This document shows, in pieces, positions 5,911-62,286 of a stretch of 64,000 bases of DNA. Position 1 is the stretch's first letter, and each line of letters begins with the position of its first letter. The notes beneath the pieces were generated by a model. The model was not told where the DNA came from, made no database searches, and saw nothing but the letters and a program-made list of their open reading frames with translations. Both the position numbers and the translations under genes were made by a program. The stretch is taken from positions 62,001 through 126,000 of the IMG/VR virus record IMGVR_UViG_3300023202_000247; one strand, 5' to 3'.

Positions 5911-6443
5911 TAACCTTGAAAAGCCCACCAAAGTTTCGAGACATTCCACCATTCATTCCATTCACTGGTTACACCGTAGATGTTACTTGGCAACATTTGC
6001 AAGAGTGGCTTGATGATGAAGAGAATAAGAATCTTGAACCTGACTTTCAAAGGGGACACGTTTGGACCGATGAAAAGCGTCAAGCGTATATTGAATTCTG
6101 TCTTCGTGGGGGAAATTCTGCAAACGATATCTATTGGAATTGTGAGAACTATGGTCGAGGAGGACAAGGAGAGCTAGTCCTAGTAGACGGAAAGCAACGT
6201 CTAACATCTGTTCTCATGTTTCTACAAGATAAAATAGCTGTTTTTGGTAAGCATCGTTACAGTGACTTTGTCGATCGTTTGGGCACTGGTACTAGACTAC
6301 ATATCAATATCAACAGCTTGAAGACACGAGCAGAAATTCTTCAGTGGTATCTTGATCTCAACACTGGTGGAGTTGTTCATACCAATGAAGAGATTGAAAA
6401 AGTTCGTCGCATGTTGAAAAAGGAGTTGAGTTCCAATGCATAA
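5907..6443 (+). CDS. DUF262 / ParB-like domain protein
   Basis: PDFQRGHVW, VDGKQRLTS, LNTGG motifs. Confidence 0.88.
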   Translation: MITLKSPPKFRDIPPFIPFTGYTVDVTWQHLQEWLDDEENKNLEPDFQRGHVWTDEKRQAYIEFCLRGGNSANDIYWNCENYGRGGQGELVLVDGKQRLTSVLMFLQDKIAVFGKHRYSDFVDRLGTGTRLHININSLKTRAEILQWYLDLNTGGVVHTNEEIEKVRRMLKKELSSNA

Positions 6444-6708
6444 AGAAGTAATCAAGTTTGAAAAAGAATGTAAGCGTTTCACTGATGCCGAGAAGACTGT
6501 TGATAATGCTGGCTACAGAGAAAATATCTTTGAATTCTATGTGTACGGTAAGCTTTTGATTTGCAAAGATAAAGAGTTGAATGTGCACCTAGCTAACTTC
6601 AAAAAGGTATTGGGCGATCATGATTTTGACACTCATATGATGACGCAAATCATGAAAAAGCTTGATAAAAATGAAGCTGAGTTTTTCAAATCATTGGCTA
6701 GCAAATGA
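6436..6708 (+). CDS. hypothetical protein
   Basis: overlap-coupled ORF. Confidence 0.6.
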   Translation: MHKEVIKFEKECKRFTDAEKTVDNAGYRENIFEFYVYGKLLICKDKELNVHLANFKKVLGDHDFDTHMMTQIMKKLDKNEAEFFKSLASK

Positions 6709-7304: not shown

Positions 7305-7525
7305 AAAATGAAAAGATTAAACTCGGGCTGATCAAGCTGTTTCAGAAAGTTCTTGACAACAAGACTGATGATGTGCTACCATTGTTGAATAGTGTTGCAT
7401 CCGTAAAAGATGTATTGGACTGGTCAGCTCGCACAGTTGGTTACAAAGATGTTGACGAGTATGTAAAAGAACATGGCAAAGATGGTCTGGTTGCGATGTT
7501 GGAGTACAAACTAAAGGGTGAGTGA
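7301..7525 (+). CDS. hypothetical protein
   Basis: ATGA-coupled ORF directly upstream of cas12f-like gene. Confidence 0.6.
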   Translation: MKNEKIKLGLIKLFQKVLDNKTDDVLPLLNSVASVKDVLDWSARTVGYKDVDEYVKEHGKDGLVAMLEYKLKGE

Positions 7526-9003
7526 TGTCTGAAAAGCCTGAACCCATTGAAACCAAAGAAGAGAAAAGGAAGAAGAGTCGCAAGCGTCAAAAGAAAGTTA
7601 CCGACACTTCGCGCAAGAAGGCTAAGATTAAAAACATTGCCAGAGTAATAAAGATTGAACTGGCAAAGCCAATCGATAGTGTATTTCACTCCAAATCTAC
7701 TCCTGTCAGTTGGGACGAGGTTGGTCCCGAACTACGTCGACAGCGGAGCATCATGCACCGGCTTCTTAATTCAGCTGTAACCGAATGTGAATTGGCTCAG
7801 CGCGGTAACATCGATAAGCCCATTCAAACTGTTGTGTATCATGCTGTTAAAAAAGAGTTTAACAGTTTTGTAGAGTGGACGAGCAATCATAAGAATAAAG
7901 AAATTCGCGACAGGTATGAAGGCTTCGCATTGCCTGGCGGAACGTTTGCTGCTGTTAGTGGAATTGCTTATAAGCAATGGTCTACATGGAAGAAGGATAA
8001 GACTGGCAGTTCCAGTCTCCCGTCCTTTCGCAAGGGTGCGCCCATCTTCATTCGCAAACAAGAATGCGAGCTTGCCAAGGATGATGATATTGGAATTTAT
8101 CTAAAGCTGAAGTTGTTTCCCAACGGTGCAATTCGTTTTGCAATTCGTCCCAGCCGTGGAGATCATTTCAAAACGATTCGTGAAATCGTCGAATCTGATG
8201 GTTCTTGCTGGCAAGGTGATTGTAAAATCATCTTTGATGAAAACGCAAGGCGAAAGAATGGTGGAAAGGGTAAGTGGTTTGCGTTTCTAACCTACTACAC
8301 TCGCGCTCCTAGTCCCGCGGATGCTGATATGAAAAAGGCTTTGGTGCTCAATCGTGGACACCATTGTTTTCTGTACGCAATGACAACAACTGGTAAGTCA
8401 CACATTATCATGCGCGGCAGTGATGTGCGAGCTTACCGTAAACGTGTCAGTAAGCTTCGAGGTGAGTTTAAGGGTAATTTCTATGAAGCGGGAAGCGGTT
8501 CCCGTGGTCATGGAAAGATGCGTAAGTATCGAGAGTATGCAAAGTTTGGTAACAAAGAATCTAATTTCTTGAAGACCAAAAGTCAACAAGCATGGGCTCG
8601 AGTGGAAGAGATTATGAAGCGGGAAGGCTGTGGCACTGTGATTGTTGAAGATTACAGCGGTGCAGAGACTCGGTTTTTGCAGTGGCCATTGTTCGAATTC
8701 AAAAACCACGGTAAAAATATGTGTGAACGTAATGGTTTCAACATGCAAGAAACCAAAAGGGTCAGTGCTATTGCATGTCCACGCTGTGGTAGTGACGACC
8801 ATAAGAAATATATGAATCGAAATCTCATTTTTCATTGCAATGAATGTGGTTTCGAACGCCCATATGATTTCGTATCCACTTTCAACATGGGGTTGGCCGC
8901 CGGTGCTGACATGGGTTGCTTCCGATTTACCCCGGCAGAAACTAGAACTGATAGAGAAGAAAAAGCAAAGCTCGAAGCTGAAGCCGCGGAGCTAAAGAAA
9001 TGA
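7522..9003 (+). CDS. cas12f: Cas12f1/TnpB-family RNA-guided protein, predicted nuclease-dead (RuvC-I D to N)
   Basis: Colinear with AsCas12f1 as recalled: IELAKP..WDEVGPELR, SLPSFRK, KWFAFLTY, KALVLNRG (vs IMGIDLG), GSRGHGK, EGCGTVIVED, RFLQW, CPRCG..FHCNECGF..D. Confidence 0.85.
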   Translation: MMSEKPEPIETKEEKRKKSRKRQKKVTDTSRKKAKIKNIARVIKIELAKPIDSVFHSKSTPVSWDEVGPELRRQRSIMHRLLNSAVTECELAQRGNIDKPIQTVVYHAVKKEFNSFVEWTSNHKNKEIRDRYEGFALPGGTFAAVSGIAYKQWSTWKKDKTGSSSLPSFRKGAPIFIRKQECELAKDDDIGIYLKLKLFPNGAIRFAIRPSRGDHFKTIREIVESDGSCWQGDCKIIFDENARRKNGGKGKWFAFLTYYTRAPSPADADMKKALVLNRGHHCFLYAMTTTGKSHIIMRGSDVRAYRKRVSKLRGEFKGNFYEAGSGSRGHGKMRKYREYAKFGNKESNFLKTKSQQAWARVEEIMKREGCGTVIVEDYSGAETRFLQWPLFEFKNHGKNMCERNGFNMQETKRVSAIACPRCGSDDHKKYMNRNLIFHCNECGFERPYDFVSTFNMGLAAGADMGCFRFTPAETRTDREEKAKLEAEAAELKK

Positions 9004-9557
9004 ATTGCAATCATACTTTTAAGGTAAGTAGCTATACTACAAAGCATATTACTTATCGTTGTAGTAAATGTAATGAGCGGGCTGAGCGTTCCTCTTCCAA
9101 GGAAGAGGAAAAGTACATTAGCGAAAAACAAAATAGGAGACTTAATCCTCCCAAACATTATGTTTGGCACAAGTTTGCCAAAGCGTTTCAAAATGATGAT
9201 ATGTCTTGGAAAAAAGAAAATCTCAACAAGATGCATGTTATCAGTAAATGGGCAGAAAAATATCCAGAACACATCCGAATCATTCGCTGTGATGATTCCG
9301 TAAATTCAAGTTCAGTGATCATATTCATTGAGCACAAGTCTGAGCGTTCATATATGGGTACAACGATGTTGTGCGTGCCTCAGTGTAGTCCTGATCCACC
9401 AATTAGTATGTTTCTTTACCCCAACCATGTGGAGAATATGATTGCTGCGCTTCAAGAAATTGAAGTTCAAACTAGAACGATCAAAGAGATTGAAAATGCT
9501 GATTCTATAAAGGACAGCAAAGAAGTTAATGAAATGTTGTCGTATGAAAAATCTTGA
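9000..9557 (+). CDS. hypothetical protein with N-terminal Zn-ribbon
   Basis: CxH..CSKC; ATGA-coupled to cas12f-like gene. Confidence 0.65.
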   Translation: MNCNHTFKVSSYTTKHITYRCSKCNERAERSSSKEEEKYISEKQNRRLNPPKHYVWHKFAKAFQNDDMSWKKENLNKMHVISKWAEKYPEHIRIIRCDDSVNSSSVIIFIEHKSERSYMGTTMLCVPQCSPDPPISMFLYPNHVENMIAALQEIEVQTRTIKEIENADSIKDSKEVNEMLSYEKS

Positions 9558-12767: not shown

Positions 12768-13208
12768 ATGGAAAAGCTACGAGTAGAGATTGACTGTCAT
12801 GGTAACAAGATGTATTACAAGTGGGATACGGATGAACTGCATAATCCATATGGTCCAGCTGTTGAAGGTGCAGATGGAGATAAAGAATGGTATCTAAACG
12901 ATAAGCTTCACCGAGAAGATGGCCCTGCTATTGAAGGTGCAGATGGAGATAAAGAATGGTATCTAAACGATAAGCTTCACAGAGAAGATGGTCCAGCAGT
13001 TGAATATGCATATGGACATAAAGAGTGGTATGTAAACGGTAAACGTCATCGTGAGGGTGGTCCTGCTGTTGAACATGCAGATGGATATAAAGAATGGTAT
13101 GTAAATGGTACCAAACTGACAGAAGAAGAGTTCAACAGTCGTCACTCATTTTGTACCAGCAAGATTGTAGAGATTGACGGAAAACGTTACAAGCTAGAAG
13201 AAGTTTGA
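12768..13208 (+). CDS. HREDGPA-repeat protein, copy 3
   Basis: same architecture. Confidence 0.85.
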   Translation: MEKLRVEIDCHGNKMYYKWDTDELHNPYGPAVEGADGDKEWYLNDKLHREDGPAIEGADGDKEWYLNDKLHREDGPAVEYAYGHKEWYVNGKRHREGGPAVEHADGYKEWYVNGTKLTEEEFNSRHSFCTSKIVEIDGKRYKLEEV

Positions 13209-13211
13209 AAG

Positions 13212-13652
13212 ATGGAAAAGCTAAGATTAGAGATTGACTGTGATGGTACAAAAAAGTATTACAAGTGGGATACGGATGAGTATCATAATCCATATGGTCC
13301 AGCTATTGAATATGCAAATGGATATAAAGAGTGGCGGGTAAACGGTAAACGTCATCGTGAAGATGGCCCTGCTATTGAAGGTGTAAATGGAACTAAATTT
13401 TGGTATCTAAACGGTAAACGTCATCGTGAAGATGGTCCAGCAATTGAATTTGTAAATGGATCTAGAGAATGGTGGGTAAACGGTAAACGTCATCGTGAAG
13501 ATGGTCCAGCTTTTGAACATGCAGATGGATATAAAGAATGGTGGATAAATGATACCAAACTTACAGAGGCAGAGTTCAACAATCGTCACTCATCTTGTAC
13601 CGGAAAGATTGTTAAGATTGACGGAAAACGTTACAAGCTAGAAGAAGTTTGA
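13212..13652 (+). CDS. HREDGPA-repeat protein, copy 4
   Basis: same architecture. Confidence 0.85.
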   Translation: MEKLRLEIDCDGTKKYYKWDTDEYHNPYGPAIEYANGYKEWRVNGKRHREDGPAIEGVNGTKFWYLNGKRHREDGPAIEFVNGSREWWVNGKRHREDGPAFEHADGYKEWWINDTKLTEAEFNNRHSSCTGKIVKIDGKRYKLEEV

Positions 13653-13655
13653 AAG

Positions 13656-14096
13656 ATGGAAAAGCTAAGATTAGAGATTGACCATCATGGTACAAAAAAA
13701 TATTACAAGTGGGATACGAATGAACTGCATAATCCATATGGTCCAGCTGTTGAATATGCAAATGGATATAAAGCTTGGTGGATAAACGGTAAACGTCATC
13801 GTGAAGATGGCCCTGCTATTGAAAGTGTAAATGGAACTAAATTTTGGTATCTAAACAATAAGCGTCATCGTGAAGATGGTCCAGCTATTGAACATGCAGA
13901 TGGACATAAATCTTGGTATCTAAACGATAAACTTCATCGTGAAGATGGTCCAGCTTTTGAACATGCAGATGGATATAAAGAATGGTATGTAAATGGTACC
14001 AAACTGACAGAAGAAGAGTTCAACAGTCGTCACTCATCTTGTACCAGCAAGATTGTGGAGATTGACGGAAAACGTTACAAGCTAGAAGAAGTTTGA
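13656..14096 (+). CDS. HREDGPA-repeat protein, copy 5
   Basis: same architecture. Confidence 0.85.
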   Translation: MEKLRLEIDHHGTKKYYKWDTNELHNPYGPAVEYANGYKAWWINGKRHREDGPAIESVNGTKFWYLNNKRHREDGPAIEHADGHKSWYLNDKLHREDGPAFEHADGYKEWYVNGTKLTEEEFNSRHSSCTSKIVEIDGKRYKLEEV

Positions 14097-14501: not shown

Positions 14502-14979
14502 ATGGAAAAGCTAAGATTAGAGATTGACTGTGATGGTACAAAAAAGTATTACAAGTGGGATACGTGTGAATTGCATAATACATATGGTCCAGCTGTTGAA
14601 TATGCAGATGGAGATAAATCTTGGTATGTAAACAATAAGCTTCACAGAGAAGATGGTCCAGCTGTTGAAGATGCAGATGGATATAAATTTTGGTATCTAA
14701 ACAGCAAGCTTCATCGTGAGGATGGTCCAGCTGTTGAAGGTGCAAATGGAGATAAAGTTTGGTATGTAAACGGCAAGCTTCATCGGGAAGATGGCCCTGC
14801 TATTGAAGATGCAGATGGAGATAAATTTTGGTCCTGCTGTTGAATTGGAAGATGGAACTAAAGAATGGTATGTAAATGGTACCAAACTGACAGAAGAAGG
14901 GTTTAACAATCGTTACTCATCTTGTACCAGCAAGATTGTAGAGATTGATGGAAAACGTTACAAGCTAGAAGAAGTTTGA
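14502..14979 (+). pseudogene. HREDGPA-repeat protein, copy 7, frameshifted
   Basis: deletion at ~14830 joins ttttgg to tcctgct, splitting it into ORFs 14502..14843 and 14791..14979. Confidence 0.8.
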
Positions 14980-15008
14980 AAGATGGAAAAGCTTCAAGAG
15001 GATATACG

Positions 15009-16283
15009 ATGAGCACAGTTGTAGTAATGAAATGTGTTTCCGCAGAAGATCATCCCAAGGCTGATGCCCTGCGCCTTTATCAATTTTCTCCCGGCGATGG
15101 TCAAGAGAATGTACAAATCATTGCCAACCTGGAAAATGTATATCAGGTAGGTGATCATGCAATCATTGCCAATATTGGTTGTATTCTCAAGGAAGATAAT
15201 CTAAATGTCAAGCCTGCTAAGTTTCGTGGTATTCCTTCATATGGAATAGCAATGGGTAAGACTGATAAGCCTGTAGGTACTGATCTAACCGATGAGTATT
15301 GCATCGAGCAAAAATCGCCGTTGCCCATTCAGAAGTGGCCGAAGATTGAGAGTCTTTCCAGCGTCCGTCAATATATGGTAGAGGTTGATGAGTTTCATCC
15401 AATCGATTACCGACCAAAGATAAAGATTGATGGGGCAAACACTTCGGTACATGTCAAGGATGACACTGTCATGGCTCAAAGCCGTGTCAAGATGCTCACT
15501 GTAGATGATGACCTGTACGGTTTTGCCAAGTGGGTTGATGCGAATCGAGACTACTGGTCTGCAATTTCTGACGATTACTTAGTTGTTTTCGGAGAATGGG
15601 CAGGTGAAGGAATTCAAAAGCGCAACGCTGCTGTAGCTAGCGTTAGTAAAAAGTTTTTTGCGGTTTTTGCAATTTACGATGGTAAGGGATATATTGTAAG
15701 CCCCGAGAAAATTCGTGCCCTTTTGCCAAAGCATGAAGACATTTACGTTTTGCCATGGGCCGATGAGAAACATACATTTGATTTCACGGACCGTGACAAG
15801 TTGCGTGTAACGGCTGAGCATGTAGCAAAGCAAGTTGCAATCGTGGAAGAGTGCGACCCTTGGGTCAAGAGCACATTTGGTTTGGAAGGTACGGGCGAAG
15901 GTCTAGTTTACTACCCTTTGCTCGAAGGCGATGATTATATTGATCAGTTTGCATTCTCCAATTTCGTTTTCAAAGCCAAAGGCGAAAAGCACAAGGTAAA
16001 GAAAACGAAGAAGCCCGTGCCCATTGATCCGGAAGTTGCTGAATCCATTGCGGAATTCGTTGATACATTTGTCACGGAGAATCGTTTGGAGCAAATGGCA
16101 ACGGAGTTGGGCTGTGGTTATGATATGAAAAAGACTGGTCAGTTTATCAAGCTTGTCATAGCTGACGTTCAAAAGGAAAGCGTTGATGAATTGAAAGCTT
16201 CCAAGTTGGAATGGAAAGATGTGGTGAAACCGGTGAGTAGCGCAGCCGTATCTTGGTGGCAAAAGAAATGTAAAGAAATATAA
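15009..16283 (+). CDS. ATP-dependent RNA ligase (Rnl2-like) with N-terminal tRNA-binding OB domain
   Basis: HPKADALR..FRGIPSYG OB domain; KIDGAN, FGEWAG, FAVFAI, GEGLV, FKAK motifs; RBS gagga before ATG 15009. Confidence 0.85.
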   Translation: MSTVVVMKCVSAEDHPKADALRLYQFSPGDGQENVQIIANLENVYQVGDHAIIANIGCILKEDNLNVKPAKFRGIPSYGIAMGKTDKPVGTDLTDEYCIEQKSPLPIQKWPKIESLSSVRQYMVEVDEFHPIDYRPKIKIDGANTSVHVKDDTVMAQSRVKMLTVDDDLYGFAKWVDANRDYWSAISDDYLVVFGEWAGEGIQKRNAAVASVSKKFFAVFAIYDGKGYIVSPEKIRALLPKHEDIYVLPWADEKHTFDFTDRDKLRVTAEHVAKQVAIVEECDPWVKSTFGLEGTGEGLVYYPLLEGDDYIDQFAFSNFVFKAKGEKHKVKKTKKPVPIDPEVAESIAEFVDTFVTENRLEQMATELGCGYDMKKTGQFIKLVIADVQKESVDELKASKLEWKDVVKPVSSAAVSWWQKKCKEI

Positions 16284-16337: not shown

Positions 16338-16844
16338 ATGGAAAAGCTACGAGTAGAGATTGATTATCATGGTACCAAGAGATATTACAAATGGGATACG
16401 TGTGAACTACATAATCCGTATGGTCCAGCAATTGAATATGAAAATGGATCTAAATGTTGGTATCTAAACGGTAAATATCATCGAGAAGATGGTCCAGCTA
16501 TTGAATATGCAAATGGATCTAAATTTTGGTATGTAAACGGTAAACGTCACCGAGAAAATGGTCCAGCTATTGAATATGCAAATGGAGATAAATATTGGTA
16601 TTTAAACGATAAGTGTCATCGTGAAGATGGTCCAGCTATTGAATATTCAAATGGATATAAAGAGTGGTGGGTAAACGATAAGCGTCATCGTGAGGATGGT
16701 CCAGCTGTTGAATATGTAAATGGATCTAAAGAATGGTGGATAAATGATACCAAACTGACAGAGGAAGAGTTTAACAATCGTCACTCTTATGCTGGCAAAG
16801 TTGTGGAGATTGACGGAAAACGTTACAAGCTAGAAGAGGTTTGA
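16338..16844 (+). CDS. HREDGPA-repeat protein, copy 8
   Basis: same architecture, four repeats; followed by relic start MEKLRL* at 16846. Confidence 0.85.
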   Translation: MEKLRVEIDYHGTKRYYKWDTCELHNPYGPAIEYENGSKCWYLNGKYHREDGPAIEYANGSKFWYVNGKRHRENGPAIEYANGDKYWYLNDKCHREDGPAIEYSNGYKEWWVNDKRHREDGPAVEYVNGSKEWWINDTKLTEEEFNNRHSYAGKVVEIDGKRYKLEEV

Positions 16845-20326: not shown

Positions 20327-20401
20327 ATATTTCTGTTGACAATTGGTTAAGCTATGTCACAATGAGCGGACATCAAGATCCCACTCACGGGGGTAAGTAA
20401 A

Positions 20402-21181
20402 ATGTCAGCACAAAAACTACATCTCAATCAAATTCTGGCAATCGAAAAAGGCCAGCGCACCAAGAACAAGCAAGACATTACCAAGGTTTATCAGCGTCTC
20501 GAAAAGAATGCGCTGCTGAATGGTATCATCGAGGACTATCGGCCAAAGGCTGAAGATGAAGAAGCCATTCACAAAGAGAATCCGATACAGCTGACCGTGT
20601 GGCAAGCTTTGTCTGATGCCAAGGCTGACTGGGTTGATTCATTTGATATCGTGGCTGCCAGAGATTGGACGAATACTCAGGCAAAAGCCGATGTCATTCT
20701 AGATGCGGATTCTACAAATCCGGTAACTCTTCTAAAAAATGTTCCGGTGAGTTTTCTTCTTTACTTCGAGAAGCAGCTCGACGATGTTTACACACTTGTC
20801 AAGAATCTTCCTACCCTTCCAACGGATGAGAAGTGGGAGTGGAGTAATGAAAGTAATTGCTTCATTTCTGACAAGAGTATAACTGAACGTAAGACTACGC
20901 TCAAGGAACCGCTTGTCAAGTTTGAGGGTAACGACAAGCATCCTCCGCAGGTAGATGTAATTGATGTCCAGAAGGTCATCGGCTATACTACCAAGCGTAA
21001 GCTCAGTGGAGCAATCCCTGCCTCCGAGCGTGAGGAATTGAAACGCCGTGTGCAAAAGCTTCAAGCCGCTGTCAAGCGGGCACGTGAGGCGGCGAACATG
21101 GCAGAGGTAGACCGCCAGAAGGTTGGCGATGCTGTCTTTGGCTATTTGTTCGAAGGCATGGAAAACTACCACGGCAAGTAA
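20402..21181 (+). CDS. conserved helical protein of unknown function, upstream of tRNA-like ncRNAs
   Basis: LNQILAIEKG, VPVSFLLYFEKQL, LPTL, DKHPPQV, KLSGAIP, AVKRAREAAN; upstream TTGACA 20336 N16 CACAAT. Confidence 0.8.
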   Translation: MSAQKLHLNQILAIEKGQRTKNKQDITKVYQRLEKNALLNGIIEDYRPKAEDEEAIHKENPIQLTVWQALSDAKADWVDSFDIVAARDWTNTQAKADVILDADSTNPVTLLKNVPVSFLLYFEKQLDDVYTLVKNLPTLPTDEKWEWSNESNCFISDKSITERKTTLKEPLVKFEGNDKHPPQVDVIDVQKVIGYTTKRKLSGAIPASEREELKRRVQKLQAAVKRAREAANMAEVDRQKVGDAVFGYLFEGMENYHGK

Positions 21182-21208
21182 AACTTTCATGGGTTTCTAG
21201 CCCATGGA

Positions 21209-21357
21209 CGAGCACAAGCTCATTAATCAAAAACAAAAACAGAGTTCTTCAGTCGAAGTGTAGGTTCGAACCCTACCCTGCCCACATGGGGGCAGGTAGC
21301 CCAACTGGCAGAGGCATCTGGAGAAAGTAAACTCAATCTTCGTCAAAGTATTGCTCG
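21209..21357 (+). ncRNA. Y RNA(YrlA)-like ncRNA 1 with permuted tRNA-like domain
   Basis: T-arm gtagg-ttcgaac-cctac 21260-21276; acceptor stem cctgccc 21277-21283 / gggcagg 21290-21296 closed by a loop; D-arm 21299-21315; closing stems ttcttcag/ctggagaa and cgagca/tgctcg. Confidence 0.75.
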
Positions 21358-21375
21358 AAGATAACTGATGCTGGA

Positions 21376-21549
21376 GGAATGTGTAATCAAACCGTGTAGA
21401 ACGATATTGTCGAAATGTCCATTCGACTTGGACCCTTCACACCGACATACTTGTTATGTCTTTAGTTCTCTTTTTACGTGAAGGTAGTGTAACGGAAACA
21501 CGCGACACTTGAAACTGATTCTACATGTTAAACGCTCCGTACACATTCT
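21376..21549 (+). ncRNA. Y RNA(YrlA)-like ncRNA 2 with permuted tRNA-like domain
   Basis: T-arm gtcca-ttcgact-tggac 21417-21433; acceptor ccttcac 21434-21440 / gtgaagg 21478-21484; D-arm gtgt-aacggaa-acac; stems tgtcg/cgaca, tgtagaa/ttctaca, gaatgtgta/tacacattc. Confidence 0.75.
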
Positions 21550-21589
21550 AAAGACCCCTGTCGGCACAGTGTCTGGCGGGACTAGTACT

Positions 21590-21629
21590 AGGCCCGGGAT
21601 GCGGTGAAATTCCCGGGCCTTCTTTTTTT
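21590..21629 (+). terminator. Rho-independent terminator
   Basis: aggcccggga..tcccgggcct followed by T-run. Confidence 0.85.
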
Positions 21630-25245: not shown

Positions 25246-25318
25246 GGGCCATTAGCTCAGCGGTTAGAGCATTCGCCTCATAAGCGACTGGTCGTAGGTT
25301 CGAATCCTACATGGCCCA
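25246..25318 (+). tRNA. tRNA-CAT, probably tRNA-Ile2 (lysidine); no encoded CCA
   Basis: cloverleaf GGGCCAT/ATGGCCC, anticodon loop CTCATAA, GGTTCGAATCC; C4:G69 and C5:G68 (TilS determinants); upstream TTGACG/TATAAT. Confidence 0.9.
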
Positions 25319-25356
25319 CAAAGATTCCAAAAATAGGAAAGTAAGGAAAGGTAAAA

Positions 25357-26706: not shown

Positions 26707-27420
26707 ATGGAAATGATTAAGTATCCCAAGACTCCAAGGTTGACAAAATCATTAGGAGTTTATGATGATAACTATGAGGTTGTTGTCGAAGAAAAGATTG
26801 ACGGCGCTAACTGCGCCGTTTCTTTTATTGGTGATAAACTCACACTTCAAAGTCGCGGTCACATTTTAACCGGCGGCAAGCGAGAGTTTTTATTTAAGCG
26901 TCTTTGGCCATGGGCTTACGAACGTCTCAATATGCTACGATACATACTGGGTGAACGATATGTTTTATTCGGTGAATGGATGTATGCTAAGAACAAAATG
27001 TATTATGATAATCTTCCGGATTACTTTATAGCATTTGATATCTGGGATAAACACAACAATTTCTTTTTGAATAGTGATATTTGGCGAGAGATGGTTGCAG
27101 GTTTCGATGTTGAAACTGTGCATCTCATAGCACGTGGAAGTGCAAACAAGATGAATAATTTTGCCCAATACATCACAAAAACAATATATAAATCAGGTAC
27201 TTGGAAAGATGAATATGAACAAAAGCTTCTTTATCTTCATGAATTTTATGATGAGTCTGAGACAGATATGTCCGACTTGATGGAAGGCATTTACATCAAG
27301 ATTGAGGATGATGAAAAAGTTGTCGACCGTTATAAGTTGATAAGAGATGATTTTGAAAAGATTCAAACCGATGATGCCAAGTGGGGTCAACGTCCCATAT
27401 TTGAGAATGGTATTAGATGA
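26707..27420 (+). CDS. ATP-dependent RNA ligase family protein
   Basis: KYPKTPRL, EEKIDGAN, QSRGH, FGEW, FIAFDI, MEGIYIK. Confidence 0.88.
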   Translation: MEMIKYPKTPRLTKSLGVYDDNYEVVVEEKIDGANCAVSFIGDKLTLQSRGHILTGGKREFLFKRLWPWAYERLNMLRYILGERYVLFGEWMYAKNKMYYDNLPDYFIAFDIWDKHNNFFLNSDIWREMVAGFDVETVHLIARGSANKMNNFAQYITKTIYKSGTWKDEYEQKLLYLHEFYDESETDMSDLMEGIYIKIEDDEKVVDRYKLIRDDFEKIQTDDAKWGQRPIFENGIR

Positions 27421-35274: not shown

Positions 35275-35615
35275 GCTTTGAAAAGTTTTTCACAGCATTC
35301 AAGGACTATCTGAATAGCAAAGGTACATGTGATAGTGGAGACTTTCCCATCAAACAATACAAAGAAGAGATGCGTATTGCTCTTAATGATATAATTGATG
35401 AGCGTATCAAGCTAGATAAACACAAACCACCTCGCAAAAGCAGCATGACTACCGTCATGCCTTCTCAGCGACCGATGGAAAGTGATAGCGTCGACATGCT
35501 CGACGCGCTAAACTGTGCCCCTATACCACCGGCCAACCCGTCTAACTATTCTCAGTGGATGGAAGCGTACACGAAATGGTACTATTCCAAAAGGAACAAA
35601 GTAATTAAACGATGA
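35271..35615 (+). CDS. hypothetical protein, paralogue of previous gene
   Basis: MSFE..LNCAPIPP..WMEAYTKWY. Confidence 0.7.
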   Translation: MSFEKFFTAFKDYLNSKGTCDSGDFPIKQYKEEMRIALNDIIDERIKLDKHKPPRKSSMTTVMPSQRPMESDSVDMLDALNCAPIPPANPSNYSQWMEAYTKWYYSKRNKVIKR

Positions 35616-37126
35616 AACAAATATCTCTCAGTAAGAAAGAGGAGATGCTTTGCAATTTGTTGATGGATGTTGTATTGGAGAAGGCTCCGGGTACAACGTT
35701 ACGTATTGCTGGTGGTTGGACCAGGGATAAATTGCTTGGTTCTACCACCAATGATATTGATATCTCCATTGATACCATGACGGGTGAGAAGTTTGCTCAT
35801 ATGGTTACTGAGTACATGGATGATAAAGATATCAAACATGGCAACATATCCGTCATCAAATCAAATCCAGACCAAAGCAAGCATCTAGAAACCGCAATGC
35901 TTAAAATCTATGGAATGGATATAGATTTTGTTAACCTTCGTAAAGAAACATATGCTGACTCTAGAATACCATCTATTGAGATAGGTACACCAGAAGAAGA
36001 TGCCAAACGTCGTGATTTAACTATCAATGCATTGTTTTATAATATAAACGATGACAAAGTTGAGGATTTTGTTGGCGGTCTAAAAGACTTGGACGATTAT
36101 AATCTCAGAACACCTATCGATGCTAAGCAAACTTTCTTAGATGACCCTCTGAGAATGCTTCGTATCATTCGTTTTGCTGCTAGATATAAATATGATGCAG
36201 ATGATTCCATCATCGAGGCAGCGAATAAGGATGATGTTAAGTGGGCTTTCTTGAATAAAGTAAGCAAAGAAAGGATGTGGACTGAAATTGCCGGGCAAGA
36301 GAAGCCTGATGGGTGGAAAAACGGTATCTTGAATGAAAAATATGCCATCCACGGTATCGAATTGCTCAACAAAATGGGTTTGCGAGACCTATTGTTCTGG
36401 TTTTCTCCGGAAGAAAAGAAATTATTGGGTCTAGATAAGGATTTGGTTAGTTTTGATTCGGATCAAAATAATCCTAATCATGATTTAACCATTTGGGATC
36501 ATACATGTAAAGTTATTGATAACCTAGAGTATTTTCGTCACTTATCTTCAAGAGAAGATGAGTTGGTTTTGACGTTATCAGCACTATTACATGACATAGG
36601 TAAGTGTGATTTGTGTTCCAGACAAGAAACTGATGAAGGTTATTACACTTATCATGGTCATGAAGACTCTTCTGCTAAGATGACAGAGTACTTTCTCAAC
36701 AAAATGAAAGCTCCTGTGCACATTACAAAGCGTGTTGTGCGTTTGGTTGCAGAGCACATGCGTCTTCACAACCTTCCCGATGATGCTTCTGATAAAGCAT
36801 TGCGTCGTTTCATGCGAGACCTCGAATCGGACTGGGAAATGTCCGTTGATTTGGCCTTGGCCGATGCAATGGGAAAGAATAACCCTCCGTTTGGAACGCC
36901 GGATCGCTACCTCAACTTTAAAAACAGAATGAAAAATCTCAAGGCTGAGATGGGAAACAAGACTGCGCCGAGTCGTCCAATTTCTGGCCATGATTTGATG
37001 AGTCTTGGCATTCCAGCTGGTCCACAAATGGGTAAGTTACTCAAACAACTCGATGAAGAGTTGCTAGAAAACCCAACTATGTCAAAAGATGAAGCTATCA
37101 ACTTTGTCAAAAGTTTGAATGTGTGA
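35612..37126 (+). CDS. cca: CCA-adding tRNA nucleotidyltransferase with HD domain
   Basis: AGGWTRDKLLG..DID, DFVNLRKE, RRDLTINAL, DDPLRMLR; LLHDIGK. Confidence 0.92.
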   Translation: MKQISLSKKEEMLCNLLMDVVLEKAPGTTLRIAGGWTRDKLLGSTTNDIDISIDTMTGEKFAHMVTEYMDDKDIKHGNISVIKSNPDQSKHLETAMLKIYGMDIDFVNLRKETYADSRIPSIEIGTPEEDAKRRDLTINALFYNINDDKVEDFVGGLKDLDDYNLRTPIDAKQTFLDDPLRMLRIIRFAARYKYDADDSIIEAANKDDVKWAFLNKVSKERMWTEIAGQEKPDGWKNGILNEKYAIHGIELLNKMGLRDLLFWFSPEEKKLLGLDKDLVSFDSDQNNPNHDLTIWDHTCKVIDNLEYFRHLSSREDELVLTLSALLHDIGKCDLCSRQETDEGYYTYHGHEDSSAKMTEYFLNKMKAPVHITKRVVRLVAEHMRLHNLPDDASDKALRRFMRDLESDWEMSVDLALADAMGKNNPPFGTPDRYLNFKNRMKNLKAEMGNKTAPSRPISGHDLMSLGIPAGPQMGKLLKQLDEELLENPTMSKDEAINFVKSLNV

Positions 37127-38591: not shown

Positions 38592-39011
38592 GTGAGTCTT
38601 CTAGATATATTAAAGAAAGAAAAGCTTTCTGCGATGAAAGCAAAGGACACTGTCCGGCGTGACATTCTAAGTCTCGTTATCGGTCAAGCTCAACAACAAA
38701 ATGTTTCGGATGATGCGGCGCTTCATGGTATCATCAAGAAACTAATCAAGAGCAATGATGAAACTTATGAAAGTGCGCGCGATGACATGCGAGATCAGCT
38801 GAAGGAAGAAAACAATATTCTTCAATTCTTTTTGCCAAAAGAAATGTCTCGTGATGAGATAATAAAGTTTATCGATGACAATGTTGACATTGCATCAGCT
38901 CAATCTGATGGCCAAGCAATTGGTCAGGTTATGAAAGCAATCAAGAATCAGAGCACCCCAGTAAACGGAAATCTAGTTAAAGAAATCGTAAACGAGAAAC
39001 GTAACAAATGA
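38592..39011 (+). CDS. GatB/YqeY domain protein
   Basis: AMKAKD, ILQFFLPKEMS..I, GQVMK. Confidence 0.85.
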   Translation: MSLLDILKKEKLSAMKAKDTVRRDILSLVIGQAQQQNVSDDAALHGIIKKLIKSNDETYESARDDMRDQLKEENNILQFFLPKEMSRDEIIKFIDDNVDIASAQSDGQAIGQVMKAIKNQSTPVNGNLVKEIVNEKRNK

Positions 39012-42000
39012 CAGAATCAATCTTTGACCAAGTACTGGCAAACCAAAAATCAATAAGCAGAATTGATAACGATCCTCAAATTTTTTATGCTCTCATCGGG
39101 CTCATGCGCAAGCAAGATCCAAAGCAGTATGAGGAAAAGTTTGGTGAACTTAGAAACACCTTAGAAGAATATCTCGTCACAATCGAGAGGGATTACGAAA
39201 TCCTGGCAAACGCTGAGCGCAGTTTGTTCGAGGAAATTCGTAAAACCACAAAACGTCGCAATCCTTTTGACGGGTTGCAAGAGCAACAAGACGATCTATA
39301 TGATCGCTTCTTCGACACGCTCGCGCCCAACTTCATTCGTGTACAAAAGCAAGTTCTGCTTCAAATACGAGATTACTTTCGTACCTTGGTAAAAGTTGTG
39401 GCTGATTTGCAGCCACGAACTTTGATGATTGCTGAAGATGCTAAGGTAGATTTTTCATCCACCGATTCCATCAACAAAATGATGGGTGAGATGAATCTAA
39501 ATAAAGGTCATGTTCGGGACTGGGTGAACTCCGTCATCCATCTAGACAAAGCTGAAGAAGCTCTTGCTCAAACAGCTGACAATGTTGTTGGTTATGTTGA
39601 AACATATTATACGTTTCTGATGAATCGACACAATTCAGAAGGTGTCGCCATTCATCGCGATCCCATCGTTACAGATTTGGCACTTCTAATCTATCAAAAC
39701 ATCGATGCCCATGGTGAGATTGATGGTGGTAAGGATCCTGAAGAGTTGAGCGCATATTCCATGCGTAAAGCTGAGATAATTGTTGATGCAATTTCTCAAG
39801 GATTTGTTTGGGACTTTATAAAAAATCCAGATAGCTTTACCGCTTTCATTCGTGAAGCATTTGAAGGTGCAAGCAAAAAAGTTAAAGCCTTGATGTCTCT
39901 TTATCGTACAGAGATAGATAACCTTAATGCCATCGTTAACTGGAAAGGTCTCAGCTTTGGTGGTTCGGATGCAGCAGAGCGACGACTAAATCGTCATCTA
40001 GATTTTCTAGGAGATGTCGATCCCAACTCGATTCGTGAACAAGAAGATACAAAGCTTCTTTCAAAAGAAGAGCGCTACAACCGCGAGTTCAAAAACAAAA
40101 CGATTGCTCACATTGTTGAGCTTCTTACACACGAGAAGCCACAGATGCGAGAGATCATCGATTATGTTCTCGCACGAAAGAAAGAACTGCGTGTATTCTT
40201 CCACGAAGAAAACAGCTTTTACGTTTGCAGAATTGGACAGGGCAATCCATTTCTCGGGACAGCCCCGGGTGCATTAGAGGTAATCCCAGGCACTCGTCCT
40301 ACCGCAAGCATGGACGACATTATCGGAAGTGGCTTTGCAGAGATTAAAGAGTTTGTTGGCCACATTGAAGATGCTGGTAAATGGCATGATTTGTTTCTTG
40401 CAACAAGTCCAAGTAAAACAACTGATAAAAGTAATGTATTACTTGTTGGACCGATGGGATGTTTAGCTGGAGAAACATATATTCAATTTGAAGTCTACGA
40501 TGAAGAAGGGAAAAGAGTCAATCACAAAGGTGGAACAATAGAGCGTTTGTATCAACGCTTCCATGATTTGCTACAAACTCACGGTAGTCATCCTCAAAAT
40601 AACAACGGCACTTTTTGTGTATCATCTGTTAATGATGAGGATCGTATCTTAATTAACAAGATAGAGGACGTTGTTAAAACTGGTGAGAATGAATGCTATG
40701 AACTTACAACTGCCAGTGGTGACTCTATTATTGCAACAGCTGATCATCCATTTTTCAATGGTGAAAAATATATCGAACTTCAAAATTTGAAAGAGGGTGA
40801 TTTTGTCACACTGCATAGAAATAAAAAGTACACGGGTGATGCTCCTATTGATAAAAATAAGAGATCCAATGATAGAAAATATTTGTATGTCAAGAATCAC
40901 CCAATAGCTGAAAAAAAGATTGTTAATGGCAAATATGAATATTACAGACTTGTGCGCGCAAGAGCTGTAATGGAAGCTCATATTAATAACTTGTCTCTTG
41001 ATCAATATGTTTCTATGTTGAACGATGGGGAAGTTAATGGTCTTTCTTTCTTAGAAAGAAACCAACATGTTCATCATATTGATGAGAACATACTAAATGA
41101 TGAGCTTAACAATCTTGTTATCATAGATAGAGCGGAGCATAATAGTAAACATGCACGCGAACATCAAAACAATCTCAGGTTTGAGATTGTTAGAGATAAA
41201 ATTGTATCAATAAAATCTGTTGGAAAAAGAACAACTTATGACATAAAAATGTCTAAGCCTTATCATAATTATGTTGCAAATAATTTTGTTGTGCATAATT
41301 GTGGAAAGAGCGAAATGCTCAGAGCTGTTGGTTGTGATAAAAATAGTCTCGGCATTTACGCACAAGGTTCGGATTTTCTTACTTGCTGGAAAGGCGAGGC
41401 AGAAAAGAATCCCAAGCGCTTGTTCGAATCCGCTGTCAAGCTGCAACGTGAGAGCAAAAAACATGTTCACATTCTAATTGATGAGATTGACTCTGTGCTC
41501 TTGAAACCAGAGTTCATGAGCTATGGAGACTCTAATTTGTCTTTGGAATTTCAAATGATAATGGATGGTGTGGTTCATTATCCTCACCTTAGTGTGTGGG
41601 GCACGACCAACCATCCCGAGCGAATTCCGATGCCGATGATTCGAAGATTCTCAAAGGTACTCATCGTTGGCGAATTGAGCGTTGATGATCGAGAGACGCT
41701 GCTCAAAACCTTTATTGGTAGTAACCTACCCATTGCTACCGTGAAGGCAGGAGAGTGGAAGATGCTTAGCTCCAAGCTCGAAGGTGCAACTGGTGATATC
41801 GTTCGTAAGGTTGCCGATCATCTATGGCGTACAAAGATGAGTTGGTTCGTTGCGAATCACGAAAAAGATGCAGAAAAGCTCGTCGAGTTCCTTAATCGTG
41901 ATGGTCAATTTGAAATTGACACGTTTACCAAAGAAGAGCGCGGAGAATTCAAGACGAAACTTTCAGATTTCTTCGAGGTAACGGCAGATGATATCAATGC

Positions 42001-42118
42001 AGCCATCGATGTTCACTTGAGAAACCCGGCAATCAATGCGGAAATTGAAGTTGCACAAGAAACTTACGCGCAAGCTCGTGAGTTCCTTAACCAATTGGAC
42101 GCTGGCAAAATGGAATAA
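39008..42118 (+). CDS. AAA+ ATPase interrupted by an intein
   Basis: Walker A GPMG/CGKS split by intein; ILIDEIDS; TTNHPERI..RRF. Confidence 0.88.
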   Translation: MTESIFDQVLANQKSISRIDNDPQIFYALIGLMRKQDPKQYEEKFGELRNTLEEYLVTIERDYEILANAERSLFEEIRKTTKRRNPFDGLQEQQDDLYDRFFDTLAPNFIRVQKQVLLQIRDYFRTLVKVVADLQPRTLMIAEDAKVDFSSTDSINKMMGEMNLNKGHVRDWVNSVIHLDKAEEALAQTADNVVGYVETYYTFLMNRHNSEGVAIHRDPIVTDLALLIYQNIDAHGEIDGGKDPEELSAYSMRKAEIIVDAISQGFVWDFIKNPDSFTAFIREAFEGASKKVKALMSLYRTEIDNLNAIVNWKGLSFGGSDAAERRLNRHLDFLGDVDPNSIREQEDTKLLSKEERYNREFKNKTIAHIVELLTHEKPQMREIIDYVLARKKELRVFFHEENSFYVCRIGQGNPFLGTAPGALEVIPGTRPTASMDDIIGSGFAEIKEFVGHIEDAGKWHDLFLATSPSKTTDKSNVLLVGPMGCLAGETYIQFEVYDEEGKRVNHKGGTIERLYQRFHDLLQTHGSHPQNNNGTFCVSSVNDEDRILINKIEDVVKTGENECYELTTASGDSIIATADHPFFNGEKYIELQNLKEGDFVTLHRNKKYTGDAPIDKNKRSNDRKYLYVKNHPIAEKKIVNGKYEYYRLVRARAVMEAHINNLSLDQYVSMLNDGEVNGLSFLERNQHVHHIDENILNDELNNLVIIDRAEHNSKHAREHQNNLRFEIVRDKIVSIKSVGKRTTYDIKMSKPYHNYVANNFVVHNCGKSEMLRAVGCDKNSLGIYAQGSDFLTCWKGEAEKNPKRLFESAVKLQRESKKHVHILIDEIDSVLLKPEFMSYGDSNLSLEFQMIMDGVVHYPHLSVWGTTNHPERIPMPMIRRFSKVLIVGELSVDDRETLLKTFIGSNLPIATVKAGEWKMLSSKLEGATGDIVRKVADHLWRTKMSWFVANHEKDAEKLVEFLNRDGQFEIDTFTKEERGEFKTKLSDFFEVTADDINAAIDVHLRNPAINAEIEVAQETYAQAREFLNQLDAGKME
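40460..41299 (+). mobile_element. intein (280 aa) with HNH homing endonuclease
   Basis: C1 CLAGET, ATADHPF, HVHHIDEN..NNL..EH..KH, NFVVHN/C. Confidence 0.92.
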
Positions 42119-61992: not shown

Positions 61993-62286
61993 ATGTCAAA
62001 AAACACCAAGCTCTACGTGATATTTTTTTTAAAGTCACTCGGCTTGATTATTTTAATCCTAAGCCCGTTTCTTTCGTTTTGGCTAACCAACCTCGGGCCA
62101 GAGGTTGAAAGTGAAATATTCATTGACGTAGGCTGCCTTTTCATCATTGGAGGTCTTCTCTTTCGCACGGGTGACGGTTTGAGTGACGAAAAACACAACC
62201 AAGACATTTTGAATCCAGCATTTTGGTTCGTACTTGCATCTGTTTGCATTGCAACCATTTTAGCATTTCACTACTTTTTGATTTAA
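61993..62286 (+). CDS. small membrane protein (3 TM)
   Basis: three hydrophobic segments. Confidence 0.6.
   Translation: MSKNTKLYVIFFLKSLGLIILILSPFLSFWLTNLGPEVESEIFIDVGCLFIIGGLLFRTGDGLSDEKHNQDILNPAFWFVLASVCIATILAFHYFLI

Follow-up and report, generated by a model that had tools for sequence, protein, structure and literature searches.

A conserved cassette of a DUF7873 gene and two YrlA-like tRNA mimics, a candidate for a Ro60-independent ribonucleoprotein

Why should a small phage gene be followed by two RNAs that resemble tRNAs encoded in permuted order, with no gene for Ro60, the protein partner by which bacterial Y RNAs are defined, in its surroundings? The question is raised by a cassette in the IMG/VR virus record IMGVR_UViG_3300023202_000247. 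We analyzed positions 62,001 to 126,000 of this record, a stretch of 64,000 nucleotides (nt) that is called the window below and whose own numbering is used throughout. The gene encodes a protein of 259 amino acids (aa) that belongs to the family DUF7873, and we found that its linkage to the RNAs is conserved and reciprocal in phages and bacteria. The RNAs are clearly relatives of the YrlA Y RNAs. Judging from sequence and predicted structure, DUF7873 and its two RNAs may assemble into a ribonucleoprotein that is built on YrlA-type tRNA mimics and does not depend on Ro60, a reading to which we give an even chance.

The gene and its RNAs are linked in phages and bacteria

On the plus strand of the window, the unit runs from a promoter-like site through the coding sequence (CDS), a hairpin, module A, module B and a further hairpin to a terminator. 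Its parts are as follows (bp, base pairs; R1, the covariance model of module B).

20336..20363, plus strand: sigma-70-type promoter-like site (TTGACA, 16 nt, CACAAT; extended -10 TG; 10/12 matches)
20402..21181, plus strand: CDS of 259 aa, DUF7873 (PF25283), with a G-rich ribosome-binding site 8 nt upstream
21188..21206, plus strand: hairpin CATGGG/CCCATG directly 3' of the stop codon, no T run
21202..21373, plus strand: module A (module 1), the first tRNA-like RNA, core 21242-21334
21242-21252 / 21318-21334, plus strand: closing stem of module A, from the fold
21260-21276, plus strand: T-arm of module A, loop TTCGAAC
21277-21296, plus strand: 7-bp acceptor hairpin of module A (3' strand 21277-21283, 6-nt loop, 5' strand 21290-21296)
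21299-21315, plus strand: D-arm of module A, directly after the TA link, GG in the D-loop
21336-21362, plus strand: local hairpin of module A
21362..21561, plus strand: module B (module 2), the second tRNA-like RNA, matched by R1 at full length with 96.9 bits
21377-85 / 21540-48, plus strand: closing helix P1 of module B
21394-401 / 21519-26, plus strand: closing helix P2 of module B
21408-12 / 21503-07, plus strand: closing helix P3 of module B
21417-21433, plus strand: T-arm of module B
21434-21440 / 21478-21484, plus strand: acceptor strands of module B, enclosing a 37-nt loop with a hairpin and a pyrimidine tract
21487-21501, plus strand: D-arm of module B, directly after the TA link
21386-90 (ATCAA), 21515-18 (CTGA) and 21528-34 (TTAAACG), plus strand: conserved unpaired motifs of module B
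21556..21581, plus strand: additional hairpin between module B and the terminator
21591..21629, plus strand: intrinsic terminator (9-bp GC stem 21591-21619, 11-nt loop, T run to 21629)

An initial annotation, made from the letters of the window, had described a single unit of promoter, CDS, two noncoding RNA modules and terminator, and reading the sequence bears this out. Each module shows the order that had been given for it (T-arm, acceptor 3' strand, loop, acceptor 5' strand, TA, and a D-arm with GG), the interrupted closing stem said to stand in place of the anticodon arm could be located as helices in both modules, and the hairpin and pyrimidine tract reported for the second module both lie within its 37-nt acceptor loop. 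The hairpin behind the stop codon is not a terminator because it has no T run; GC-rich hairpins are found at the equivalent position in loci L001 (Actinomadura macrotermitis) and L003, which also carry terminators equivalent to that of the window. The latter was overlooked by the scanning tool, whose loop limit is 8.

A strict grammar, consisting of a 5-bp T-arm, a 7/7 acceptor hairpin, a 2-nt link and a D-arm, returned modules A and B as its sole two sites on both strands of the window, and the 3' region folds better than its shuffled versions (z = -4.1). At the gathering threshold, Rfam reported nothing in the cassette region; Rfam at this threshold and ARAGORN found only the tRNA-Met at 25246-25319 and no canonical tRNA or tmRNA in the cassette, and blastn of the region against cultured phages gave no match.

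When the same grammar was applied to 82 loci with DUF7873, 119 modules fell within the 900 nt that follow the gene, compared with 10 in the remaining ~2.2 Mb, and 76 of the loci had at least one. Covariance models extended this result. R1 gave full-length matches in about 67 of 74 viral sources and matched all 79 bacterial loci (Streptomyces, Actinomadura), 77 of them at full length; the bacterial matches lie on the same strand, 130-260 nt past the gene, and none was found elsewhere in 965 kb. The model of module A, R2, gave full-length matches in about 75 of 91 sources, including the module A of the window (94.8 bits). Two Actinomadura-type loci, which were reached via homologous proteins, contain two YrlA-like matches and a terminator at the same position. 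The initial annotation had proposed that the DNA downstream of homologous genes be inspected, and by the grammar, R1 and R2 searches these genes carry the RNAs almost always.

The reciprocal search started from the RNA, with a DNA pattern of D-arm, gap and TTAAACG. Among its 29 long-gap matches (21-29 nt), 28 have the spacing of module B (25-29 nt), and for 25 of these a DUF7873 gene lies 214-693 nt upstream; it is not visible for the other three, whose sequences start within 450 nt of the match. The 29th match (L296, gap 21) has no DUF7873 in the ~9.5 kb upstream. Short- and middle-gap matches are ordinary tRNAs such as tRNA-Asn, and another pattern, AGAGC followed by a gap of 0-24 and TTAAACGCCG, was discarded as too unspecific, giving chance matches only. 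Overall, bacteria contribute at least 563 loci with the cassette, mostly Streptomyces among those listed, and DUF7873 occurs in at least 292 viral contigs.

In Gordonia phage Ziko (L166), two small CDSs annotated as hypothetical proteins, gene 125 (8720-8833) and gene 126 (8979-9188), stand just downstream of DUF7873; gene 126 overlaps the matches of R2 (8936-9109) and R1 (9088-9289), gene 125 lies just upstream of them, and at least gene 126 is probably a mis-annotation. Microcoleus phage My-WqHQDG (L165, 11235-11672, minus strand) has a degenerate module with a T-arm, a 7-bp acceptor hairpin whose loop measures 82 nt, and no recognizable D-arm; a second tRNA-like match is located 2 kb further downstream.

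The modules fall into two conserved types, A first and B second, in agreement with the initial description of two RNAs that differ in sequence and share a fold; both types are permuted and tRNA-like. Type A has a tRNA-Leu-like D-arm, a discriminator that is mostly A, four CUNA repeats in its 5' strand and a 3' strand of roughly UCAGACUAUCGCUCCAAGCU. The outer stem of the window's module A is degenerate relative to the family and largely lost, and the CUNA repeats are weak there (21210-21250). Type B has an ordinary GCUCAAUGGCAGAGC D-arm, a discriminator that is mostly U, and unpaired motifs in the 5' strand (AUCGA) and the 3' strand (CUGA and UUAAACG(C)CG). NCCA stands at the start of the acceptor loop in 40 of 106 unique modules. 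As a separate observation, the CUNA repeats have a period of 6-7 nt and are mirrored by UNA in the 3' strand (e.g., L011 8752-8810, L017 8727-8780); the resulting helix of regularly spaced U-A / N.N / A-U steps could be a putative platform for binding a multimer.

Covariation supports the fold downstream of homologous genes, which answers the structural test that had been suggested for them. With RNAalifold on MAFFT alignments, compensatory changes were found in the T, acceptor and D helices of module A and at 27 of the 29 predicted pairs of module B, including P1 and P2. Among 149 model-aligned sequences of module B, 96% of the cells are paired, compared with 59% after shuffling and 40-47% when the partners are slid, and double changes occur at all 29 pairs. 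The closing stem of module A was not recovered by RNAalifold on MAFFT and model-derived alignments or by a column-pair scan. Because this stem cannot be aligned by column, we used an alignment-free comparison of cognate flanks: in both modules, a 5' flank pairs better with its own 3' flank than with a non-cognate one (Wilcoxon p ~5e-10), and the flanks of each window module outpair all 15 non-cognate partners. Real split or permuted tRNA genes were ruled out, as there is no anticodon loop, and a conserved aminoacylation identity such as G3:U70 was also rejected, since it is not conserved.

The assignment of the protein to DUF7873 is firm (E 3e-71; 240.4 bits against a cutoff of 27), the match covering residues 7-251 and profile positions 3-243 of 244. 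Pfam gives DUF7873 only, in line with the initial remark that the adjacent protein has no recognizable TROVE or vWA features, and PHROGs, PADLOC and NCBIfam returned no match. A profile search of 1.84 billion representatives found 2,716 clusters (50% identity) at E <= 0.001, of which the best 150 are 216-260 aa long and are matched over nearly their entire length. The family is uniform in length (~245 aa), no fusions were seen, and it has invariant polar residues; its invariant set includes Q10, N91, W145, H180 (in an HPxQ motif) and N232. Structure prediction, which had also been proposed, was run with AlphaFold from 22 homologues and gave a confident fold (predicted local distance difference test score, pLDDT, 87; predicted template-modelling score, pTM, 0.71), in which a long helix and a beta-hairpin are repeated three times and followed by a terminal long helix. 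This fold has no counterpart in PDB or BFVD: Foldseek gave nothing at E < 0.01 (template-modelling score ~0.15), and a profile search of PDB sequences with DUF7873 gave nothing either. A capsid- or encapsulin-like protein was considered and rejected, as there is no HK97-fold match and the gene is solitary in Streptomyces chromosomes. No description of the cassette was found in the searchable literature, several key papers being inaccessible, and a search on DUF7873 returned no papers; the proposed protein-RNA particle is probably undescribed.

Relation to YrlA and the rival explanations

The YrlA topology that the initial annotation saw is shared by both modules. In a permissive scan, YrlA (RF02553) was the only meaningful match (module A, 21259-21315, 20.3 bits); module 2 had no match to this model and neither module reached its gathering threshold of 69 bits. 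These low scores are no argument against kinship because the Ro-linked YrlA of mycobacteriophage Bxz1 also stays below the threshold, at 32.5 bits. Module B and the Bxz1 YrlA have in common UUAAACGCCG directly after the D-arm, and the full-length model of module B matches the tRNA-like core of the Bxz1 RNA and not its stem.

The partner of these RNAs is a separate matter. The proposed recognition site of Rsr is GNCGAAN0-1G in the 5' strand (Chen et al. 2014, PMC4201824), and it occurs here at chance level, in 3 of the 59 flanks of module A (1.4 expected) and 4 of the 47 of module B (1.0 expected); the GTCGAAG of the window's module A (21252-21258) is most likely due to chance. In the published cases, YrlA and rsr share a strand and are at most about 4 kb apart (PMC4201824). 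The window contains no TROVE or Ro60 protein, as judged by Pfam on all open reading frames (ORFs) of at least 430 aa and by tblastn with three Ro60 proteins, which agrees with the initial report of no Ro60 nearby. With the same three queries, tblastn was positive at 2 of 163 loci (L012, L051), where Pfam confirms vWA_Ro60 and TROVE. At both, the Ro60 gene shares the strand of the cassette and lies within 2-7 kb of it, 2-6 kb upstream. The Ro60 gene of L012 has unusual tRNA-like RNAs of its own downstream, apart from the DUF7873 pair. These RNAs (6420-6680) are a tRNA whose anticodon region carries ~60 extra nt and a non-permuted tRNA-like RNA with a long arm in place of the anticodon arm; this arm contains UUAAACG, the motif that is conserved in module B.

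The two proteins also differ in their distribution. DUF7873 occurs in 75 phage records (GenBank/INPHARED) with hosts in Vibrio, Gordonia, Rhizobium, Klebsiella/Serratia, Arthrobacter, Pseudanabaena, Ralstonia and Microcoleus, and Ro60 in 356 phage records with hosts in Mycobacterium, Streptomyces, Gordonia and Microbacterium, so that the host genera are almost disjoint. In the cassette-bearing phage Ziko, tblastn found no Ro60 in 66.4 of 68.9 kb, and the annotation of the stretches examined names no Ro60, RtcB or RNA ligase.

In the ribonucleoprotein that we propose, one transcript would yield DUF7873 and, from its 3' part, two different YrlA-type tRNA-mimic RNAs. By analogy with the YrlA of Mycobacterium smegmatis (PMC4201824), RNase P would cut at the acceptor 5' strand, after which trimming or completion would give the acceptor 3' strand its CCA, the phage encoding a CCA-adding enzyme of its own; besides this precedent, acceptor stems of 7 bp and the NCCA that some modules encode suggest such processing. 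The products would be nicked, tRNA-shaped particles carried on a long stem. DUF7873 may bind the internal loops of the module B stem (AUCGA opposite UUAAACG(C)CG, plus CUGA) and the periodic CUNA repeats of module A. The exposed elbow and acceptor end could then recruit enzymes that handle tRNA, for example ligases, nucleases or modification enzymes, or keep them occupied. Recruitment of this kind would be analogous to the role of Y RNAs for Ro60 in RNA repair and quality control. The earlier idea of a tether for RNA-processing enzymes is plausible, and genes for RtcB, a CCA-adding enzyme and two proteins of the RNA ligase family are present in the window. The modules offer no anticodon loop, which makes the companion idea of a decoy against anticodon nucleases a weak one.

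Several observations weigh against this proposal. About 10 viral loci carry module B only, without module A, and the lineage of L024 and L025 has a DUF7873 gene without RNAs; in L024 no tRNA-like module was found within 8 kb on either side. Here a terminator hairpin directly follows DUF7873 (8717-8852) and precedes a membrane-protein gene, and L025 is assumed to be alike. Since the fold of DUF7873 has no match, no RNA-binding domain can be named, and the family is near neutral (median pI 6.25), which is atypical for RNA-binding proteins. Genomic linkage, taken alone, fits a cis-acting RNA element equally well. A Ro60 partner in the host also keeps some probability because module B shares a motif with one Ro-linked YrlA, that of Bxz1.

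This last point leads to a scenario that the initial annotation had itself named, namely plain YrlA RNAs with an Rsr encoded elsewhere. The partner would lie in the rest of the 321-kb phage genome, of which the window covers 64 kb, or in the host, and DUF7873 would be a tethered accessory or effector or a mere neighbor. The exclusive Rfam match to YrlA, the weak score of the Bxz1 YrlA itself, the shared UUAAACGCCG and the two viral loci with Ro60 upstream on the same strand are in its favor; however, the window and 161 of the 163 loci have no Ro60, compared with a distance of at most 4 kb between published YrlA and rsr genes (PMC4201824), the recognition motif is at chance frequency, and the phages with DUF7873 and with Ro60 belong to nearly separate host genera. 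The lack of a Ro60 match over most of Ziko, the separate RNAs beside the Ro60 of L012, and the failure of the module B model to match the Bxz1 stem also argue against it. A distant Rsr is disfavored and we regard it as unlikely. Still less likely is a role in conflict, in which the cassette would be a phage counter-defense or bacterial defense unit with the RNAs as tRNA-mimic decoys or sensors for attackers of the acceptor end or elbow, or the RNA half of a type III-style protein-toxin/RNA-antitoxin pair. The cassette is indeed an autonomous two-part element found in variable genomic contexts in phages and bacteria, it often stands beside phage tRNA arrays, and the phage of the window is rich in tRNA-repair genes. 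However, four family members gave no PADLOC match, anticodon nucleases would not be decoyed by RNAs without an anticodon loop, and the RNA consists of two unlike modules 3' of the gene instead of a tandem repeat 5' of it, as in ToxIN-type systems; the presence of the cassette in at least 563 bacterial loci, mostly Streptomyces among those listed, is more housekeeping- or stress-like than that of a sporadic defense island.

Less likely again are cis-acting elements of the 3' untranslated region, whose cleavage by RNase P and RNase Z would define and stabilize the 3' end of the DUF7873 mRNA or set its dosage, and would release RNAs without a function of their own. It fits this explanation that no terminator or promoter separates the CDS from the RNAs in the window, that a conserved hairpin directly follows the stop codon, and that the length of the acceptor stems, 7 bp, is the one required by RNase P (PMC4201824). 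However, both module types are kept across phyla, and long covarying stems and unpaired motifs far from the cleavage sites amount to far more conservation than processing alone would call for; the NCCA that 40 of the 106 modules encode and a stem motif in common with a trans-acting Y RNA also point away from it. These three rivals are less well supported than the Ro-independent ribonucleoprotein.

The reading to which we give the lowest probability makes DUF7873 an enzyme and the processed modules its dedicated cofactors or substrates. Each module, lacking an anticodon, would then end in a free CCA on a body that resembles tRNA-Leu (A) or tRNA-Gly (B), and could serve as an aminoacylated carrier off the ribosome or as a handle that presents RNA ends to repair ligases; the internal loop of UUAAA and AUCGA would be a T-loop-type platform for docking the tRNA elbow. 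If true, Ro60-Y RNA and SmpB-tmRNA would be joined by a new class of protein-RNA machine.

The Ro60-independent ribonucleoprotein would matter for the Y RNAs as a whole. Bacterial Y RNAs have so far been defined by their partnership with Ro60, and in the part of the literature accessible to us only a predicted Band-7 case hints at another partner. Given the abundance of the cassette and its tractable hosts, the purpose of tRNA-like Y RNAs and the dispensability of Ro60 become testable. The ribonucleoprotein would also give a large domain of unknown function its first functional context and would allow the correction of phage annotations in which small CDSs are called over the RNAs, such as genes 125 and 126 of Ziko.

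Genomic context and other genes of the window

No neighbor family is conserved around the cassette. The best one is found at 7 of the 82 viral loci and, in the mostly Streptomyces set, at about 21 of 79; none of the neighbors is related to RNA repair. Of 79 viral loci, 37 have a tRNA gene no more than 1 kb from the cassette. The window itself encodes the following RNA-related functions.

14976-16283: RNA_ligase fused to a tRNA_bind domain
25246-25319: tRNA-Met (Rfam, ARAGORN)
26707-27420: second RNA_ligase-family protein
35612-37126: CCA-adding enzyme (PolyA_pol head, HD, tRNA_NucTran2)
55147-57549: RtcB (match at residues 393-798 of an 800-aa ORF), 34 kb from the cassette

None of the RNA ligases, the CCA-adding enzyme or RtcB is a conserved neighbor in other loci. 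The N-terminal 392 aa of the RtcB ORF have a weak LAGLIDADG match, which may indicate an intein or the insertion of a homing endonuclease. A 1036-aa ORF (39008-42118) has an intein splicing domain inserted in an AAA ATPase. Three tandem ORFs (12768-14096; also 16338-16844), each exactly 146 aa long, are probably paralogues and show faint DUF6745 matches. A 493-aa ORF (7522-9003) weakly matches the TNB domain of Cas12f1-like/TnpB proteins, and TnpB-like genes are found near the cassette in 6 viral loci (e.g., L082 3138-4280).

Two further RNA genes occur near the cassette elsewhere. In A. macrotermitis (L001, 468-855), the gene for the RNA of RNase P, the enzyme predicted to process the modules, lies 5 kb upstream, which is probably a coincidence. 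Three viral loci (L051 7081-7372, L060 and L074) have a tmRNA gene no more than a few kb from the cassette, and in L051 this gene is located between the Ro60 gene and DUF7873.

Comparison with known systems

The modules can be compared with several RNAs in which the parts of a tRNA are rearranged or reduced. The circularly permuted tRNA genes of Cyanidioschyzon merolae mature into complete tRNAs with an anticodon loop. As in these genes, the 3' half of each module (T-arm and acceptor 3' strand) is encoded before the 5' half (acceptor 5' strand and D-arm); unlike them, the modules yield no decoding tRNA because an open-ended long stem replaces the anticodon arm. In the tmRNA-SmpB system, a tRNA-like domain without an anticodon arm works with a small dedicated protein, and two-piece tmRNA arises from a circularly permuted ssrA. 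The modules likewise have no anticodon arm, and their permuted order would likewise be resolved by processing at the acceptor stem. In contrast to tmRNA, they have a proper D-arm and no conserved G3:U70; a tag reading frame is missing, ARAGORN reports no tmRNA in the cassette, and the protein is not SmpB.

YrlA (RF02553; PMC4201824; bioRxiv 10.1101/312249) has the same order of 5' stem strand, T-arm, acceptor-like hairpin, D-arm and 3' stem strand, and its RNA is also closed by pairing of the 5' and 3' ends. The YrlA of M. smegmatis is cut by RNase P and receives CCA (PMC4201824), and the 7-bp acceptor and the CCA-like start of its loop recur in the modules; the production of two different RNAs from one locus recalls YrlA and YrlB. 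On the other hand, the stems of the modules are longer and have other conserved loops, GNCGAAN0-1G is not conserved, the scores lie far below the Rfam threshold, and there is no conserved linkage to RtcB. The linked protein is also different, a DUF7873 of ~245 aa instead of a TROVE and vWA ring of ~530 aa; the CDS of the window, with 259 aa and no TROVE or vWA match, is much shorter than the Ro60/TROVE ring proteins (~500-550 aa).

The remaining system for comparison is the predicted one of a Band-7/SPFH protein encoded next to b7a-tRNA and RtcB. DUF7873 gives no Band_7 match in Pfam and the cassette loci have no conserved RtcB neighbor; b7a-tRNA is described as being very similar to a real tRNA, in contrast to the permuted modules without an anticodon arm. 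This predicted system does pair a tRNA-like noncoding RNA with a non-Ro protein, and it thereby offers a precedent for Ro60 being replaceable as a partner, which is what we propose for DUF7873 and its two RNAs.

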